From: Paragordius varius
Lineage: Eukaryota > Animalia > Nematomorpha
Direction of reading: 5' to 3'
Length of the DNA stretch: 64,000 nucleotides
NCBI GenBank assembly: GCA_964247055.1
Contig: OZ176058.1
Location: forward strand, 1,240,001-1,304,000
The notes below the pieces were generated by a model, which was not told where the DNA came from, ran no database searches, and was given only the letters and a program-made list of their open reading frames with translations. Shown one piece after another: positions 2,331 through 57,568 of this stretch (positions are counted from its first letter, which is position 1; the number at the start of each line of letters is the position of its first letter). A program made the translations under genes and the position numbers.

Positions 2331-5300
2331 ACTCTTACCATACGATGCGCCTAAAAATAGTATAAACAAATAGCATATAATTTTGTGTGGGTGACGACGA
2401 AGGGTTGTTAAATAACATTCGTATTAACGTCGTGTGAATAATAATGTAAGAAATAATTATTTATTAAAAACTCAAATTTTATCCCAATGGCATCATCAGG
2501 AGTTGTTAAAAAAAATAAACTTAAATAAATGTAAAACAGAATAAATTAAATGACATTTTTAACTAAAAAATAATTGTACTTTAAATCATACAAAATATAT
2601 GATAATTTTGTCTTACCTGGTTGCCCAGGCTGACCTGGTTGCCCGCCTCCGCCTCCCCCACCACCTAAAACAAATATAATTTAAGATAATATGAAATTTA
2701 TTCTTTTTTGTTTAACCAAATTAATTTATGTAAAAGAGGCCATATAAAAACATATTTAGATATATATATATATTCGAATTGTAATTTTTTATATGAGAGT
2801 TTAGTTACAGCAAAAATTTAAAATTATACGGACAACGTAAAAATATAAAGACAAATATTTTATTCCATACAACCATAGTTTTTAAAACTTGATTCCATTA
2901 GCACACATTGTTTTAAATGGCAAAGTGTGGAATAATATATTACTAACACAATCAATTCTTTATATTATAATTGTAACTAGATAATTTTATGAGAAAAATT
3001 AAGGTTTTTAAAAGTATGGTTGTCTTTTAAACAAAAATATTTTTGTAATTTTACGTTTTCGTATATCAGTTTTTACTGTATATGCATACATATATATTCG
3101 AATTGTAATTTTCTTTTATATAAATTTAATTGAGAGTTTAATTATCTAAGAAGAGCTTTTTGAGTTTTTATAATGATTGTTTGTTAAAATATTCCAAATT
3201 AACGTGTCTCTTACGACAAAAACTCACGGAATTAAAATATTTTATTTTTTCATAAAATTTAATCATTACACACATTATATAAATAAAAAATATTATATTT
3301 TTGGTGCTACATATTACAGTATAAATAAATATACATTGCTAGAAAGTTATTTATTATTGCGAAGTAGTATATACCACAAAGGGAAACATTATTGATTTAT
3401 AGCTATTTTTTCACTTTTTACTTTTATTAACCAATAATAATTCTCTATGTGGGAATAATTAATAACTTTATAGCAATGTATACTTAATCATATCTAATCT
3501 TAAAGCAAGTTAATAAACTTTATAAGTAGATTTTTTTATAATTTTTTTTCAAAAACAAAAAAATTAAAATTTAAAGTAAAAATTAGCTTATTAATGTTAA
3601 CTGACTCTCCCCATGTTTGAAAAGAAAATTATATTTACCCCCACCTCCGCCATAACCACCGCGTCCCCCATGGCCTCCGTCTAAATATTATACAGTAAAA
3701 ATTGAAATTATACGGACAAAATGTAAATAATAAAGACAAAATTTTTTTTCAAAAGATAATCCCATACTTTTTAAACCTTAATTTATCCCATAAAAATGAT
3801 TATATTACAATCGTAAAATACACAATTGATTGTGTTACCAATTTACATTTCTATATTATACTTTGTAGTATAAAGCAATCAGTTGTAATTAATATCAATC
3901 AAAATTAAAAAAGTATGGTTGTCTTTTTGAAAAAAATATTTGTCTTTATATTTTCACCTTTTGTCCGTCTATCCATTTTTACTGTATATATTTCATTAAA
4001 TTATTTTAGAATAACATTTTTTGTGTTCTACTTATATTAGCCTTCAGAAAAATTACAATCCATAATTTGACACACTCAAACACCATACTAGGGTATCCAT
4101 AATTTTTTACACTGGTAGTAAAAATAATATAATTTTGAAAGGAAATCATCAATTACGCTTTTTAATATTGTCAATCGGCTTGTAGACATTTTACTCAACT
4201 CACCAATAGTTTATATCATTCACAGTTCAAAATCACCCTTGAACAATTTAAATTCACCCTTGAAAAATTCAAATTCTCCGTATAATAAATTGTGTATTTT
4301 TTTAGATTAGAAAAAGTTATATTTTTATGCATTTTTAAAAAAATGAAGTTTTATTTAAAATTAAAATAATACTAAAAAAATATAAACTATGCCATAAAGA
4401 TAAATTTCATATTATTAATGTGTTATATTAGTTCTAAAATGTATAATATATTTTTAGGGTGAATATGAATTGTTAAAGTGTGAATTAGAATTGTTTCGAG
4501 GGTGAATTTTAATTGTTAAAGGGTGATTTGAACTGCAAATTGTAAAGTGCCAAAAAATTGATTGTTGACAGAAAATCGTTCGTCGATCTCATTCCCATTG
4601 ATACAAAGATTCAGTTAGAGGATGTGGAAAAAATTCTTTTAAAAGCGATTATTTTAAGGTTTATTCACAGTTTTGTGTGTGAGACGAAGCATTGTTATCT
4701 AACAAAATCATTCTGCCATGTTTTCTGGCTCATTACGTTTGTTTTGCAGTTATTAAACCGCAGAATTGGGACAATATTTAGACATGTCGTAAACCCTTCG
4801 ATGTTTACTCGTTTATGAAAGCTATGCTTTTCAAAAAAAATTATCTATAATAATTTTCCATTTATTTTTCGCAAAATTGCGGCTTGTGTATTTCATAAAA
4901 CAAATTATGCCAAAAATTTACCATTTTTAACTTGGCTAAATAAATATTGACATATTTTTTCAGATTGATACGCCCCTTACAGACGAGAAAACAGCGTAAA
5001 AAATACATTTTCTAATTATAAAGTAGTTCGATTTTGGCCCAATATTATATATATGAGTTAAATTAACTTATTTAGCAGTAAAAAAAAGATATTTTATACT
5101 TTATTTCGACATTGTATATACTGTACTCTTTAATTATATTTTTAGATAACAATCAGATTTAATATGGTTTCAATTCTGATGCCAAAAAATATTTAAATCA
5201 ATATAATCTTGGTGTTGGTTATAGTTTTGGCTTCGATTTCAAATTTTACGGGACCGAGTCCATTGTTTTTACAGTTAAATTTGAAATTATACGGACAAAA

Positions 5301-5882: not shown

Positions 5883-6845
5883 GTGTGTTCAGTTTTTAAG
5901 GGTTAATTTAGTTTTAGCGTACATTTTAATGAAATTAAAATGTTTGTTTTGGCTGCTTTTCATTTATCAATTTAAATTTCACTCGTTCAGTGTGTGTTTG
6001 TTTTACATCACACCGTTTAATTTTTATTTTAGGGTACAGTTAATAAAAATACTGGTTTCAGCCAGCCGTTAATAAATCTCTAAGGGTAAAACGTAAAAAA
6101 TGCTCTGCTTTTAATTTTGTCAACCTAAATATAGCAACCAAAAATATTATTCATTATATGGGTCTTTAAATGGTAAATTGAAAAAACGAGTGTGTTAAAT
6201 TTGTTTATCAAGGGTTAATTTCGATTTTAGGGTGCATTTTAATGAAATTATTATGTTTGATTTGACTGCTTCTCATTTATCAATTTAAATTTCACTTGTT
6301 CAGTGTGTGTTTGTTTTACATCACACCGTTTAATTTTTAGGGTACAGTTAATTAAAATACTGGTTCTAGCCAGCCGTTAATATATCTCTAAGGGTAAAAC
6401 GTAAAAAATGCTCTGCTTTTAATTTTGTCAACCTAAATATAGCAACCGTAAATACTATTAATTATATGGGCTTTTAAATGGTAATTAGAGAAAACGAGTG
6501 TGTTCAGTTTTGGTTTATCAAGGGTTATTCGATTTTAGGGTACATTTTAATGAAATTATCATGTTAGTTTTGACTGCTTCTCATTTATCAATTTAAATTT
6601 CATTCGTTTAGTGTGTGTTTGTTTTACATCACCGTTTAATTTTTATTTTAGGGGGTACAGTTAATTAAAATACTGGTTTTAACCAACCGTCAAATCTAGA
6701 ATTTGTTTGGTTATTTTCACCGTTAATATATCTTTAATAAGGATAAATGAAAAAAATGTTCTGCCTTTGATTTTGTCAACCTAAATATAGCAATAAAAAA
6801 TACTATTAATTATGTGGGTCTTTAAATGGTAAATAGGGAAAACGA
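5883..6845. repeat. Tandem repeat, three copies of ~308 bp
   Basis: Anchors such as AACGAGTGTG, TCAATTTAAATTTCA..CAGTGTGTGTTTG and TTTTGTCAACCTAAATATAGCAA recur about every 300-350 bp. Confidence 0.85.
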
Positions 6846-17922: not shown

Positions 17923-19766
17923 TTAAGTTCCAAATAACTTTAGCTCTTATATATACGCAAACTTTATATAAATTTATCAAAAACTATATATTTTTAGAGC
18001 TATCCTCCATAGTTTTGATGTATATATTTATTCACTGATGCATCGAATAAAGTAACAAAATCAAAATTCATAAATTTATTTCTATGAAGTAACGCACTAT
18101 AAAAATATTATATCAAAGTTATTATACACAAAATTTTTGCCTCATTTATTCGCAAATAAAAAAATTTGATATAATCCATCCCATCCGGTGGTTTAGGTTC
18201 ACCTGTTTTCTTAAAACGTCAGCCCAATTCGAGTTAAAACGGCACATCCCGATTTAACCTAATATAATTTGTGTGTTAACAATAAAATGTTATGATTGGA
18301 GAAAAAGGTTACTAATGGTATCACTAATGCGCTAGTAATAAAATATGTAGACTTTAAAATTCTATTGCACACTTAAAGATGTTTCAGGTAAAAAATGTAG
18401 AATTTCAAAAGGTTTAATCATGGCTCTATTGACCTAGTTAGATCAACCCGCGTAAATTTGCTGAAATAATCGATTGATTTCAACTTTACCTTCATGTTTT
18501 TACCCTTTTCCTCCTAATAAAACATGTTATTTTTGGAAAAAATTGATCAAATAAAATTATGAATGAAATCAAACCATCATAAATATATTTTTTACCGCTT
18601 TAAAAAATAGCAGGTCAAAAATGAACACATGTTTATTTCTTTGGAAAAATATATATAAAATAATTGTATGAGATCATTTTACATATACATTTCAAAATCA
18701 AATTCAAATTCGCCCTTGAACAATTCAAATTCATCCTAATATAAATTAGTGTTTTCGAACTATATAACTCATTATTAATATGAAATACATCTTTATGGCA
18801 TAGTTTATTAATTTTTTAGTATTATTTTAATTTTAAACAAATTTTTTATTTTTTAACTTAAATATATATTTATTTGAGAGTGAATTTTAATTGTTTAAGG
18901 GTGATTTTAAATTGTTCGAGGGTGATTAATTGTTTAAGGATGAATTTAAATTTTAAAAATTATAGAAAACATTTAAATATTTGTTGTTATCAAATTAACT
19001 TATTTTATCAGTCAATTCCGTTTTAGTTATTTTTTACATTATGTATTTAGTATGTTGCATTATTTAATCAACAAGACTGCGATTGACAGCATATATTATC
19101 CGGTCAGGCCGGTTTAAATAAATAATACTACTCAAATATTTATGCTTTAATTAATGAAAAATAATGAAATATTTTTTTTATTTTTAACTTATTAACAGGA
19201 TTTCACGATTGTGTTTAATTTTGAACGATCAAAAATTATTAATTAGCAGTTTATATAAAAATGGGAGAAGTGAGTGATGATAAAATTGTTAATAAAGCTA
19301 ATTCTGAGATTCCACTGTAGTCTTTGGAATAGGTTACAATAAACTAATCCTATTTCATCCTGAATTAATTTTTATCATAAATTTTCTATATAAGTCTATT
19401 TAATTTTAGCAATAAATTAGAAAAAAATTATGTTATATTCTGTCTGCATTAGTCCCTCTGCTCAAAAATTAAAATTAATACGGACAAACGCAAACATCTA
19501 AAGAAGAAATATTTTCTCAAAGATAGCCATATATCTTGATTTATTTTAATATAAATCCCTCTACGTAATTGCAACGTATTGAATGGACTATATATTTTTA
19601 ACACAATCAATTATTTATATTTTACAATAGTATGATTTATGCGAATTTGTCATTTAGAAAAAAATAATCATGTTCATATATTTACTCTCTGTGTAATTTA
19701 AATATTTACTGTTTTATGAATGAAAGCCCATATATATATTTATATATATATATATATATATATTTA

Positions 19767-26198: not shown

Positions 26199-29100
26199 CC
26201 ATATATGTCACATACAAATGTTTAATTTTTCATATTTCGTTTTTAGAAAGAAAAGAGATATTACAAATTGAGGAATCTTTAGGAAATTTAAATTATATAA
26301 AATAAATTTTGGCAAGTCTAATATATATTATATAATAAATTATTAACCTGCATTTACTATATTGAAAAATTTTGAATTATAGCTAGTCCATATTAAAAGA
26401 GTTTTTATATTATTCTGTGTTAAATAGATGACGTATTTAAAAAAATTACTATATTATATTCACAAAATTTTAATTCACAATTTTTTTATTTAATATGTAA
26501 CACGGAAATTCATAAATATAATTTTATTGTTTAAAAAAGAATCATAAAATTTGAATATTATAATAATATGAAATAATAGAAATATTTTGTAATCTTCAGA
26601 TGAGTTATCGATTGATTTTTTAATTTTAGGCTATTAACAATATTTTATTTAACACTTGGATACAACACAAACATAGTCCTTCGTTTCAAATTAAAATAGT
26701 TGGATACCCCAGGCCTGTTTAAAATTTTATTTTTTTAAAAGATATGGAAGGAATCGGACCCATGGCAAAATTTTTAATAAACCGAAATATATAAAAAAAT
26801 TTATTCAAAAATACTCGATATTACTTATTTTGAGCTAAAACTGAAAGGTAAAAATTTAGTCAACAAGACATGTGTCAAATTGTAAAATTAAAAAATAATA
26901 CAAAATAAACCACTTTATCTAAATCTATCAATAAGTTGTTTTAATAGAAAATTTGCTTTAATTCCTTAAATTAAATGAAGACAATATTTTGCAAAGAATT
27001 TGTATAATAAAAATGGCGTCAAAGTAGTTGGACATCGAACATTTTTAAAACCAAATTTTATTTAGATATTTTCATTCATATAAAATTTTATTAGGATAGA
27101 AGCCCAAATTTGGGACCGTTTCCTTCAATAGTTTTTTTAAAATCATAACTTAAATTCAGTCTGGGGTATGTACATATCCCATTTTGAATCGAAGTGTGAA
27201 CATATATTAAATAAAAAAAAAATAATATACCTTTGAATATATATTTTCAATTTTTAAATTCAAACTTTATCGTAATTGAATAAAAATAAAGAACCACGCA
27301 ATTGTTCTTGATTTTTAGCACAAATTATATAAAAATATAAAGAAAAAGACAATTATTTTATATAATACTTTATTAACATTTTCACTTTTATACCCTATTT
27401 TTATACTGTTTTTAATTATTTTAAAAATTATTTATCAAACATTGTTCTCATGTATTAGATAAAAAAAGTTTATAATTTTCACAGTTTTGTGACATCTAGA
27501 TTCCAAAATTGGACAGACCTTCAAAATATAAACGAACAGCTGACATTACAATCATAACATATCAAGATTTGGTTATTAAAATGTAGCCTGAAAGTTTTTT
27601 AAAGTTATTTATTCATTTTCTAACCATGATATACATTTATTATGCTGCACAAGCAATTTAAAAAAACAGAGAAACAAAATGGAGGCAAAAAAGTTTGAGA
27701 TGAGGTTTTTTACAATTTTACATTTTTTAGAAAAAATTATATGATGCGCCTTAAAGGCTTAAGACAGCATATTTTGTGATTCGGCTTAATAGCTTAATAT
27801 ACTTTAAAAATATTTTAATAATTCTCTTAGGTCATGAAATTACCCCTAAAGGTGATGAAATGTCAAATACTTTTTAAAAGATAACTAACTGTATTTGTTA
27901 CCCAAATAAACTATTAAATTAACCATATTAATCTATGTAATTGAGTGTGTTACCAATTTACATCCATGTCCCTTTTTCAACCCTAAATCGATGAATTTTA
28001 TATTAAGTTTAAAAAATGGCTTTAAAAAATATAAATCTTTAAAGTTAAAATTGATAATAAAAATTAAATTTTCTCTAAAAAACACCTTACTAAGCCTTAA
28101 TTCTTACTATATAAACTATAATTGTAGAATATGTAAGTGATTGTGAAACCAATCTACTTCCCTATTTAATACTTTGCAATTTAATAAGCTATATGAAAAT
28201 ATTAGCTAAAACAATGCCGCGGTTTTTGGAAGATTAATGTTTTTTAAATTAATTTTAACTTTTGTCCGTTTAATATCAATTTTTACTTTAACAAACATTA
28301 TAATCCTAAAATATATTAATTTTAGAATACACTAATATAACCCAATAAATAGATGACGCATTCCCCATAAAAAAATTTTTTATATTCGTTAAACCTATAT
28401 TTTTTAATATATAGCATCCATATAATTTCAAAAAAGGAAATTGAATTCTGTCCTGATACGAGATAGTTAACTATATTATATCCTAAATATTTGATTGATT
28501 GGCAATAATATATCATAAGTTAAATTCAAACTTTTAAAATAAATATTATTTTATATAAAAGAGACATGTTATGGATACTTTCATTTTGGCCTACCTTTGC
28601 ATTTCATAGTCATATTACCTTCCATCAAGACTTTATTAAAGGAAAATTTAAAATATGACATTTAGTGTTGGCATTTAACTGTTTTTTCAAAAAAGTCCGG
28701 TCCTGGTCATGACTATATTTTAATTAATTAAATATAATCTATTAGATTGTGAAAATAATGTTCGAACGACACTTGCGTTTCACTAAAAATGTCATGTTTT
28801 TTCTTAATTTGTATTAGACATTTTTTTTGATAAATGATTTTTGCCACATATTTGTGGCCTTCTGAATCTTTAAATATATAGCTATAAATACTGGATAACA
28901 TATAAAATTTTACTTATTTGTTTACACCTTCTTTCATCATTGAAATATCCAATTATAAAATGTTTTTTTTATTTTATTGGTTCACATATATGGAATAATT
29001 GCATATTCTGCTCAGTGATTGAATGTTTTGTTTTTCTAGCTTAAATGCTAAAAACAATTTTTAATATATTGTGTAATAAGCATATTTAAGCATTAAATAT

Positions 29101-29280
29101 ATTTTCTAAAAAATTTAATAAACAATAAAGTCATCTAACTAACTCGATTTCAAAAAACCTACTAGCAATTTTTCAAAAACTGTCTTTTTAAATGACCATG
29201 GTAAAAAATAAATAGTCACTGACCTAGTCATGACCTGATCATGTTTTTAAAATGACAGTGTTTATACCAGGTGGTGTGAG

Positions 29281-30105
29281 GCGCGTTTTTGCTTTAGACT
29301 CATCAGTTGTACCTAAAATAAACACGGATTGTCAGTTATTTATGATTCTGATATACTGAGTATTTAAGTTTTTAGGACCAGATGTAGTTGGTTAAGTAAG
29401 AACTTCATAGAGGTCACCGATTGTATTATTATCAAACCAATTATCATATCTCCTTTTAATCCATAAGTCAGGATTGGGCTTATATAATTAGGAAATCACA
29501 AATTTGTTGGCAGAAAACGTCAACTTTATATATATATATACATGTTTTGAAGATTATTTTGTTAGCTTACATTTGGATTTAGATGTCTAGGTCAATTCCT
29601 TTCAAGCAATAAGTTATTTTATAAAACAAAATTTCTAAGAGGGCAATATTTTTCACGGGTTATAGTGCAAGATGCGTTTCGTCCTTGTTCTGGACTCATT
29701 ATCCACAAATTGAATACGGGTGTCAGTTAGGATTTTTTATAGATACTGAGAGTTTTTAAGACCAGATGTAGTTTGTTAAGTAAAAACAGAGAATTTAAAG
29801 CCCAGAGATGTCAAACGATTGTTCTACTATCAAACCAATTATCATATATCCTTTTAATCCATAAGTCAGGATGGGGGGCTTATATAATTAGGAAATCACG
29901 AATTTGTTGGCAGAAAACGTCAACTTTTTATTAAATATATAGATATATACGTGTTATGAAGATTATTTTCTTAGCCTACCTTTCCATTTAGACTAGTACT
30001 TCCTTTCAAGCAATAAGTTTTATATAACAAAATTTCTAAAAGGGCAGGATTTTTCATGGGTTATAGTTCAAGACGCGTTTCGCCCTTGTTCTGGACTCAT
30101 CCACA
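29281..30105 (-). ncRNA. Tandem ~400-bp repeat with three degenerate type-I hammerhead ribozyme motifs (retrozyme / Penelope-like)
   Basis: Two similar monomers (about 29331-29700 and 29721-30100). GACTCAT anchors at 29297, 29693 and 30094. Minus-strand motifs CAACTGATGAG, GAGTCC-AGAACAA-GGAC-GAAAC and GAAACGCGTC-TTGAAC. Confidence 0.7.
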
Positions 30106-32676
30106 CATAATAAACACGATTTTTGTTTTTTAAAGGCACCTGCCTCTTGCTTGATAGGAACTACTATGACTTCCAAATGCCAAGGTAGGCTAAGAAAATA
30201 ATAACCATGACACGTTTTATATTTAATATAAAGATGGCGTTTTAATCATCCTTATAATAATTAGTAATTAATTTTTATATTTTAATTACCCATTCATTAC
30301 CTATAAAGGTATTTCTTTAAATGCCAGAACGATTTAAAACTTGAATTTTCAATCAAAGTATTTAAGGTATTATGCCGAAAAAAATAAAATATCCCTTCTA
30401 TCCATCCTCGTCGCCAAATAAGATATAGAACGGTATAATGTTATTAAACGCATTATACAAATTTTTTTTTGCAATAAATCTAAAATTGTCATTTCAAACT
30501 TTTTTGCCACCATTATTTTCTTATAAATTTTTATTAAATTGCCAATGCAACAGGTATATAAAAGTATATAATTATAAGAAAATGTACACATTAACAAGTT
30601 TTCAATTTTAATAGCAAAAACTTGATATATTTTGATTTTAATATCAGCTGTTGGTTTTAATCATGTTTTGAAGGTGTCTCAATTTTAAACTCTAGAAGAC
30701 ACAAATAATTATAAGCTTTTTTTATTTGATAAACAATGTTTTATAAAATTTAACTATAATAACTTTCAAAACTGTTGTTTATTAACAAAATTTAGCTTTA
30801 GTATATAAAACTGCCTTAAAAGGTAAACTAGGACAAAAACGTCAAAAGGTCACAAAGTTTTAAAATATTTAAATATATAATACATAAAGCTATGATGCTA
30901 AAGATTAATATTATGCGGGCAAAAATAATTAAAAAACAAATATTATTTTAGTAATTATTTAAAAATGTTATTTTTATTATATATTTATTTTAATCAGTTT
31001 AAATTATTTAAAAAACAGGCTTAATTTATTTTTTTTCTATCAAAAGTCTAAATAAGTTAATTTATATTAAAATTAAAAAAAAATAAAAAAATCTTTTTAT
31101 TAGAAACATATCCTATATCTTTTAATTTTTTGCCATCTGTATTAATTGAATTTCTAAAATAAAAAGATATGTAATTACTTTTTACTGTTGTGCTGCCTTA
31201 TTTTGTTGTTATTTACTTACGTTTTTATAAGGCAAAAAAAATAAAAAATAAAAATAAAACGTAATACAGGTAAAAAAAACAGGTAAATAAAAAATCGTAA
31301 AATATACTTTCTTCTCTTGTACTTTTTTTTCTTTTTATACATTTTTTATGTAAGAATAACTTTTATATTTAAAATAAATCTTTATAATACATTTATATTA
31401 TATATATTGTTTTCAAAAATTTGCTCAAACAATTGAATTCAAAGAATGGGAATATACGTTAGAATTCAAATTTCATTTGAAAAGTAATGTATTTCGCTTT
31501 CACTGATGAAATAAATTTGATATATTTAAAAAAATATATTCCTTCTGTAATATCAGATATTCTGAAATATATTATGAATACCAAAAATCCCGAAATTTAA
31601 TTAAATACATACAGGTATAATACTACATTTTATAATTCTTTAATTATTTTTTAAAAAAAGAATTATAAACCATCGTATACAAATTCGACCTGTGTCTTAA
31701 ATTTTATATTTGTAGATTTTTTGTTTCCAACATTTAAAAACTTGAGATTACCATTTACACCTCAAATTCACCCTTGAACAATTCAAAATCACCCTTGAAC
31801 GTTTAAATTCACCCTAAAAAGTGTTTTTTAAGATTAAAAATTACCCGTATTCTTACATATATAAAATGAAATTTTAAAATTAAAATTATACTGAAAAATC
31901 AATAAACTCTGCCATAAGGATATATTTTTCATATTAATAATGAGTTATAATAGTTCAAAAAAATATAATTTATTTTCAGGGTGAATTTGAATCATCCAAG
32001 GGGGACTTTGAAATGTAAATGGTATATGATCCCATAATGTTAAGATCATATTTTTTTTCATTAACAAATGCATCAATTCACCTTTATATATATGAATAAA
32101 GTAGTTAAATATTTTTATCATGTCATAAACACTTTAAATAAGCTTAATTCTACAAATTTTTTCAATATTTCAAAAATTATGTATCTTTTGTAACAATGTG
32201 GTTACTTTTCATGGCTTAAGGCTATTAGATTACAAATGCATCTCTTAAATAATATCAATATGAGCTTTTTTCGTCTAAAAATTAGTTTGTACAACGGTGA
32301 GTTTAGAGAAATAGATATAAAATTTGGCATGTATGAATATGCATCATAAAATTCACAAAGAGCAGAATATTTCCATAATATATTTATTTTGATTTTATGG
32401 AAAAAAAATGATTTCAATACCGATTTCAAAAAAATTAATCAGATTTTAATGGTTGTCTCCAATCTATTTTTAATAATTATCATATATTTTTAAAACCTTT
32501 CTATTTACTCAGTGTGTGCATTAAAATTAATATTTTTACTCCTTTTACCCAATTAATGATACTTTCACTAGTTTTCAATTTTCTTATTGAAATATTTAGA
32601 TTATCCGGACAAAAAAAGGCATTATAAAAGATAGATTCTAATAAACGCTAATTTGATAAAGCCCTTCTTGTATAAT

Positions 32677-57568
<24,892 letters not shown>

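Follow-up and report, generated by a model that had tools for sequence, protein, structure and literature searches.

Positions ~28550–30243 of the window (the whole 64-kb stretch of DNA analysed here) very probably represent what remains of an ancient and now inactive insertion complex, formed by a small hammerhead retroelement that codes for no protein and is of the non-autonomous Penelope type. The complex contains about 1.1 kb of its own sequence and, together with a foreign insert, takes up 1.7 kb on the chromosome. To judge from its sequence and that of its relatives in the genome, the element is most probably of a kind that is already known, the animal non-LTR retrozyme. The locus had been assigned to the retrozyme or Penelope-like repeats in a first-pass annotation, and this assignment was borne out by the head-to-head pairs and the one-sided extension described below.

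RESULTS

Three decayed hammerhead motifs lie in register in the window

The first-pass annotation had reported three decayed hammerhead motifs on the minus strand, 396 and 401 nt apart and none of them intact, and this description held. With the ATGAGTC anchor (at 30100, 29699 and 29303), the spacing of the motifs was 401 and 396 nt; with the cleavage-site C (at 30072, 29671 and 29280), it was 401 and 391 nt, the second value being 391 instead of 396 because of a 5-nt deletion in HHR1. All three motifs are in register within direct repeats of ~400 nt, the blocks of which are 86–100% identical. The ~400-nt period was absent from the output of Tandem Repeats Finder for the window, because indels break the repeat, and was recovered by a separate repeat search.

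A covariance model, designated R1, was built from 22 distinct intact copies of the family, all of which lie outside the window. The results showed that HHR1, HHR2 and HHR3 are the top three R1 matches of the 64-kb window (Table 1), the next match scoring 13.7 bits. Rfam at gathering thresholds gave no matches in the window, and RF00163 at a relaxed threshold picked out HHR2 alone, with 15.2 bits against a cut-off of 34. The R1 scores against the family of intact copies indicate that the window motifs are real and homologous, and that each of them is broken.

The complete catalytic core (CUGANGA ... GAAA ... cleavage site H17) is absent from all three window motifs. In HHR3, a deletion has removed the core CUG, a U-G wobble preserves helix II, and GAAAC-GCGUC is intact. 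HHR2 has a perfect helix II, the core AUAAUGA in place of CUGAUGA (C3 and G5 mutated) and the helix III sequence GCAUC in place of the family's GCGUC. HHR1 retains CUGAUGAG, has lost GGACG (the 3′ strand of helix II plus G12) through its 5-nt deletion, and reads GCGCC where the family has GCGUC (U16.1 → C). The 5′ strand of stem I in HHR1 is mutated to GUACAA and its 3′ strand is still the family-type UCACAC, the 3′ strand being UUGCAC in HHR2 and UUGAAC in HHR3. Only HHR2 and HHR3 have AGAACAA as loop II and UUGNAC as the 3′ strand of stem I; neither sequence occurs in any other genomic copy.

Table 1 Positions of the window element and its hammerhead motifs, of other window repeats, and of related loci in the genome
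Feature	Position	Strand	Remarks
Inverted 5′-truncated arm without ribozyme	30119..30243	+	Inverted repeats with 29914-30013
HHR3, decayed hammerhead	30108-30064	minus	R1 45.5 bits, E 1.6e-11
Unit A, 401 nt	29671..30071	minus	HHR3 to HHR2 cleavage sites
HHR2, decayed hammerhead	29710-29663	minus	R1 50.5 bits, E 4.4e-13
Unit B	29281..29670	minus	Ends in HHR1
HHR1, most decayed hammerhead	29314-29272	minus	R1 16.5 bits, E 0.02
3′ tail, first part	29244..29271	minus	Family homology stops at 29245-29254
Nested MITE-like repeat, 583 bp, unrelated family	28661..29243	.	Splits the 3′ tail
3′ tail, second part, to 'short end'	28550..28660	minus	Family matches 28652 to 28546-28566
AGGGTGAATTTGAATTGTTC sites	2229-2276, 4222-4276, 4456-4532, 18873-18952, 31762-31815, 35762-35816, 36493-36568, 39383-39438		
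Young Penelope-like elements	L073:5204-8516, L074:5115-8954, L075:4697-7204		RT + GIY-YIG, frames up to 788 aa
Genome places of L073, L074, L075	G000 C1:4.914 Mb, C6:0.306 Mb, C3:3.780 Mb		
Penelope 3′ ends with TCCATA + AT-rich run	L073:5204-5230, L074:8930-8954		
L040-L044	G000 C1:11.675 Mb, C2:5.641 Mb, C2:11.500 Mb, C6:7.863 Mb, C10:2.883 Mb		Hammerhead subfamily in larger repeat

Intact copies of the family are present elsewhere in the genome

The genome searched was an assembly of 110.6 Mb in 44 contigs. A 32-nt core pattern gave 33 exact and 53 one-mismatch matches genome-wide, and R1 gave at least 141 matches, among which the intact copies scored 74–82 bits. A complete core together with helices I, II and III was present in family copies outside the window, so that the intact relatives which had been expected elsewhere do exist. 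The proposed genome-wide BLAST of the 401-nt monomer was also run and returned at least 76 matches at 69–88% identity. RF00163 produced dozens of full-length 44-nt matches genome-wide with 30–33 bits against the 34-bit cut-off, and many of these sub-threshold matches fall within the monomer matches. Because they score just under the Rfam cut-off, the intact ribozymes of the family are missed by routine annotation.

The intact family copies that were read out are nearly identical to one another (a natural example is L004:1502-1549, minus strand). They consist of stem I, in which GUGUGR is paired with UCACAC, the core CUGAUGA, helix II GUCC/GGAC with loop II ACAAYAA, and a 3′ side of GAAAC followed by GCGUC, with predicted cleavage after the C. 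A helix descriptor applied to control loci gave 6 bp for helix I, 4 bp for helix II and 2–3 bp for helix III. In the family unit, which is ~400–450 nt long, helix III has 2 bp under a palindromic 2-nt loop; the intact copies thereby confirm that these hammerheads are of type I and that their helix III contains the palindrome ACGCGU, as had been annotated. Helices I, II and III of 6, 4 and 2 bp, together with a palindromic loop of 2 nt, characterise the canonical type-I hammerhead of metazoans, which is expected to act as a dimer (PMC4209133).

The ribozyme that had been rebuilt by combining the three window motifs fared differently. Its stem I, GUNCAA/UUGNAC, is a chimera that departs from the true family stem I, and the pairing is a coincidence, since the mutated 5′ strand of HHR1 and the locus-private 3′ strand of HHR3 happen to be complementary. 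Its loop II, AGAACAA, is the variant private to HHR2 and HHR3 and not that of the family.

Folding was examined for the hammerhead and for whole units. In the predicted fold of the intact unit, helix I is lengthened by a ~16-bp stem formed from the ribozyme flanks. The intact unit L003:1479-1888 had a folding z of −3.8, and 0 of 100 shuffles were as good; unit A of the window had a z of +1.4 and did not fold better than shuffled sequence. In unconstrained folding and co-folding of the 48-nt hammerhead, alternative pairings were preferred, a result that neither supports nor tests the dimer model.

A second hammerhead subfamily was also observed, in the form of an inverted element of ~540 bp inside a repeat of at least 2.5 kb. 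This host repeat has at least five copies of 87–92% identity (L040–L044), and the ribozyme element was apparently carried along as the larger repeat multiplied. In addition, decayed hammerheads with the same score recur on the same strand at C7:2856280, C7:2914120 and C7:2964097 of G000, with a spacing of 50–58 kb, and at C8:4381946 and C8:4389998 of G000, with a spacing of 8 kb. The recurrence of these copies on C7 and C8 suggests segmental duplications bearing the element.

Extent of the window element and its nested insertion

Family homology changes from the minus to the plus strand at 30118/30119, the head-to-head junction of the window element, and continues as far as 30243. The plus arm so delimited corresponds, in unit coordinates, to the stretch ~37–160 nt downstream of the cleavage site, and its terminus belongs to the 'long end' class of the family. 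Units A and B are 85–92% identical over most of their length by pairwise alignment; unit B remains ~88% identical to unit A up to ~29345, with clearly lower identity beyond, and is 81% identical to the monomer over unit positions 1–312. The end point of the 3′ tail is approximate and lies between 28546 and 28564. No convincing target-site duplication of the window copy was found at 28546–28564 and 30244, where the flanks are AT-rich and old; at locus L004, a target-site duplication of ~13 bp is seen. The element (28550–30243) contains no ORF of more than 75 aa. The GC content over the element stretch is 0.22–0.26, in a window that has ~25% GC and is rich in repeats, and that in these respects resembles eukaryotic chromosomal DNA.

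The 583-bp repeat that interrupts the tail has at least 40 genomic copies over positions 3–581 of 583, at 70–77% identity, and its subterminal inverted repeats are GGTCATGACTA / TAGTCATGACC. On either side of it stands one copy of a 13–14-nt duplication, TGTCAT(A)TTTTAAA, at 29244–29257 and 28646–28660, and the copy at 29244–29257 makes up the last 14 nt of the first part of the tail. This duplication is unusually long. By its position within the tail, the insert came later than the retrozyme copy. Other repeats of the window include a tandem motif of 20–21 nt, AGGGTGAATTTGAATTGTTC, which occurs together with its complement at no fewer than eight window sites in both orientations; these sites are probably subterminal repeats that belong to a further family of small transposons. 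A 308-nt tandem repeat of 2.5 copies with 89% matches was reported by Tandem Repeats Finder at 5898–6690.

The family carries a Penelope-type insertion footprint

Among the R1 matches listed, 25 pairs lie less than 1 kb apart, and 23 of these are minus-then-plus, that is, head-to-head. One further pair is plus-then-minus, and the last, on the same strand, is the window locus itself. The tandem array that the first-pass annotation had proposed is therefore present at the window locus but is an exception in the family, for which the head-to-head inverted pair is the rule.

The arm ends of 29 loci were mapped onto a natural reference copy. The result showed that the 5′ ends of the arms are spread over reference positions 12 to 371 and that the 3′ ends fall into two classes, 125–141 and 151–186. 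The 5′ ends at these 29 loci do not pile up at the cleavage site, only one arm starting within 8 nt of it, and even this start is ambiguous, as the ribozyme lies in a symmetrical hairpin. A short-ended arm was joined to a long-ended one in all of the pairs examined (16 of 16), giving a one-sided extension of 20–55 nt. The window copy has the same arrangement, its plus arm being of the long-end class and its minus tail of the short-end class. Insertions of Penelope-like elements are described as truncated to a variable degree at the 5′ end, with partial tandems, a short extension at just one of the two ends, and, on the 5′ side, an inverted copy that is itself 5′-truncated (PMC8557442). As far as the mapped arms tell, the footprint of the family matches these features.

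The window locus is of uneven age

Four paralogous segments of the locus (unit A, unit B, the plus arm and the tail) were compared over 103 aligned columns. Units A and B and the arm showed 79–87% mutual identity and 81–85% identity to the family majority, whereas the tail was 58–64% identical to these three segments and 67% identical to the family majority. Private changes numbered 21 in the tail versus 2–6 in units A, B and the arm, and HHR1 plus the tail were 3–10 times more mutated than those segments. Nor do the three motifs rank as equal sisters: HHR2 and HHR3 have private changes in common, and decay has gone much further in HHR1 and the tail. An origin of the diverged tail from another subfamily was considered and rejected, its best genome-wide match being only 74%. 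The plus arm is 85–90% identical to copies elsewhere, as against 76% (BLAST) or 83.5% (alignment columns) to unit A. On the strength of these identities, the locus combines two younger sister units, A and B, which have variants of their own, with an older copy (HHR1 and the tail) to which they are joined in register, and with a plus arm of yet another lineage.

One clean insertion event fails to explain a locus in which the tail is so decayed and the arm is closer to distant copies. Since the array is unusual for the family and its age is not homogeneous, the three-motif minus-strand array probably reflects more than one event. Homology-primed reverse transcription, ectopic gene conversion and local duplication could each explain part of the locus.

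It is possible, although we regard it as doubtful, that an ordinary insertion of ~1.3 units grew into the tandem as DNA, through unequal crossing-over, replication slippage or ectopic gene conversion between copies, and that the array was not copied from multimeric or circular RNA; with such an origin, the array would be silent on a rolling-circle template. This account agrees with the changes that HHR2 and HHR3 have in common and that are found nowhere else in the genome, with the close sister relationship of units A and B next to a far more diverged HHR1 and tail, and with the finding that more than one hammerhead is present in 0 of ~45 arms at the 29 other loci. However, units A and B are nearer to the family majority than the tail is, which duplication of an old copy would not give.

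The younger units A and B have no 3′ tail of their own and are joined exactly in register to HHR1 and the tail. It seems improbable that a multimeric or circular retrozyme RNA, primed by homology at a nick in the older copy, was reverse-transcribed to give the array, or that Penelope elements lacking a hammerhead of their own carry the hammerhead family.

Penelope-like RT/GIY-YIG matches of the genome are not linked to the family hammerheads

The genome contains several families of open frames of 700–790 aa that combine RT with a C-terminal GIY-YIG. Some of these elements are very young, with inverted arms 98–99.8% identical and (TA)n flanks (L073–L075, Table 1). A search for Penelope RT/GIY-YIG ORFs linked to the hammerheads had been suggested and found none: no such ORF is present in the window element, and 0 of 60 RT/GIY-YIG matches in the genome lie within 5 kb of a family hammerhead. 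As there is no ORF and no RT/EN match within 5 kb, the window element is not an autonomous member.

A hammerhead is said to be always present in canonical EN+ Penelope clades. No hammerhead was found at the three autonomous Penelope loci with a strict regex, the helix descriptor, Rfam with E up to 10, or R1 with filters off. BLAST of the unit against one inspected autonomous Penelope family gave noise and no significant similarity, the 3′ end included. Since the inspected autonomous family has neither a hammerhead nor similarity to the unit, it is the architecture alone that points to mobilisation in trans by the Penelope machinery.

The presence of such autonomous elements in the genome, and the fact that the hammerheads of Penelope-like elements sit in their terminal repeats (pLTRs; PMC4209133), raise the alternative that the window element is a leftover pLTR of an autonomous Penelope-like element from which the ORF was later deleted. 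We consider this very unlikely, because no coding remnant lies within or beside the window element, the RT/EN matches keep their distance of at least 5 kb from the family hammerheads, and neither a hammerhead of this kind nor similarity to the unit was seen in the autonomous elements inspected. That the window motifs are chance matches in AT-rich repeat DNA, unrelated to ribozymes, accords with every single one of them being below the Rfam threshold but has a negligible probability and is refuted by the R1 matches, by the in-register alignment of the motifs and their flanks with intact family hammerheads, and by the core pattern reversed as a control, which gave 0 matches genome-wide.

Two features of the 3′ ends of the Penelope elements were also recorded. 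In the young elements, a hairpin in the 3′ UTR precedes GAAAU and an AT palindrome, an arrangement that loosely recalls a degenerate core. In addition, TCCATA plus an AT-rich run stands a few nt before the terminus both in the retrozyme short 3′ end (L003:2000-2015) and in Penelope 3′ ends; this common motif is too short for significance at 25% GC, although a recognition signal common to both might be sought at this position.

DISCUSSION

Retrozymes of animals have been described (PMC7229834), and a recent preprint argues that the terminal repeats of Penelope elements gave rise to them (bioRxiv 10.64898/2026.07.22.740005). The family found here resembles the animal non-LTR retrozymes (PMC7229834; 10.64898/2026.07.22.740005) in its non-coding, low-GC unit of a few hundred nt with a type-I hammerhead, in the co-occurrence of Penelope-like elements in the genome, and in an intact unit that is predicted to fold into a strongly self-paired RNA. 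Animal non-LTR retrozymes have type-I hammerheads in same-strand tandem repeats of 150–450 bp, and the window locus has periods of 401 and 391–396 with 2.3 units. The family differs from them in its near-total lack of tandem copies, since 23 of the 25 close hammerhead pairs among the listed R1 matches are inverted, and the window copy differs in being dead.

With canonical EN+ Penelope-like elements (PMC8557442, PMC4209133), the family has in common the footprint of truncation, head-to-head arrangement, partial tandem and extension at one end; its palindromic helix III, too short for a stable monomer, is likewise that of Penelope-like element hammerheads. Unlike Penelope-like elements, the family has no RT/GIY-YIG ORF, and its hammerhead is the canonical one of 6 bp, 4 bp and 2 bp and not the min-HHR that lacks helix III. 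Newt satellite 2 and Schistosoma Sm-alpha (PMC4209133, PMC7229834) form long arrays or SINE-like families, in contrast to the short inverted pairs of the present family and the mere 2.3 units of the window locus.

How such copies may arise can be sketched from the literature on Penelope-like elements and animal retrozymes. Source copies would be transcribed, and the RNA would be cut to unit length by its hammerheads, which would probably pair up as dimers by means of the ACGCGU palindrome. The unit RNA would then be copied into the chromosome by target-primed reverse transcription, with the RT/GIY-YIG protein supplied in trans by an autonomous Penelope-like element; copying of this kind would leave 5′-truncated arms joined head to head. 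Once inserted, the window copy decayed: a different essential part is missing from each of its ribozymes, and the stable fold of the unit is gone.

The window locus itself matters little, since elements of this kind are already known and this copy is dead. The family to which it belongs is a clean, countable hammerhead family without ORFs and with the full Penelope-type insertion footprint, and this footprint supports the proposal that animal retrozymes are non-autonomous Penelope derivatives. If the family were carried by hammerhead-less Penelope elements, its ribozyme would be a parasite of the parasite. If homology-primed copying of a multimeric or circular RNA did build the window array, partial tandems of the Penelope type and arrays of retrozymes could grow in this manner, and the array would point indirectly to a rolling-circle template. 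Tests of dimer-dependent cleavage could use the intact copies as natural substrates.
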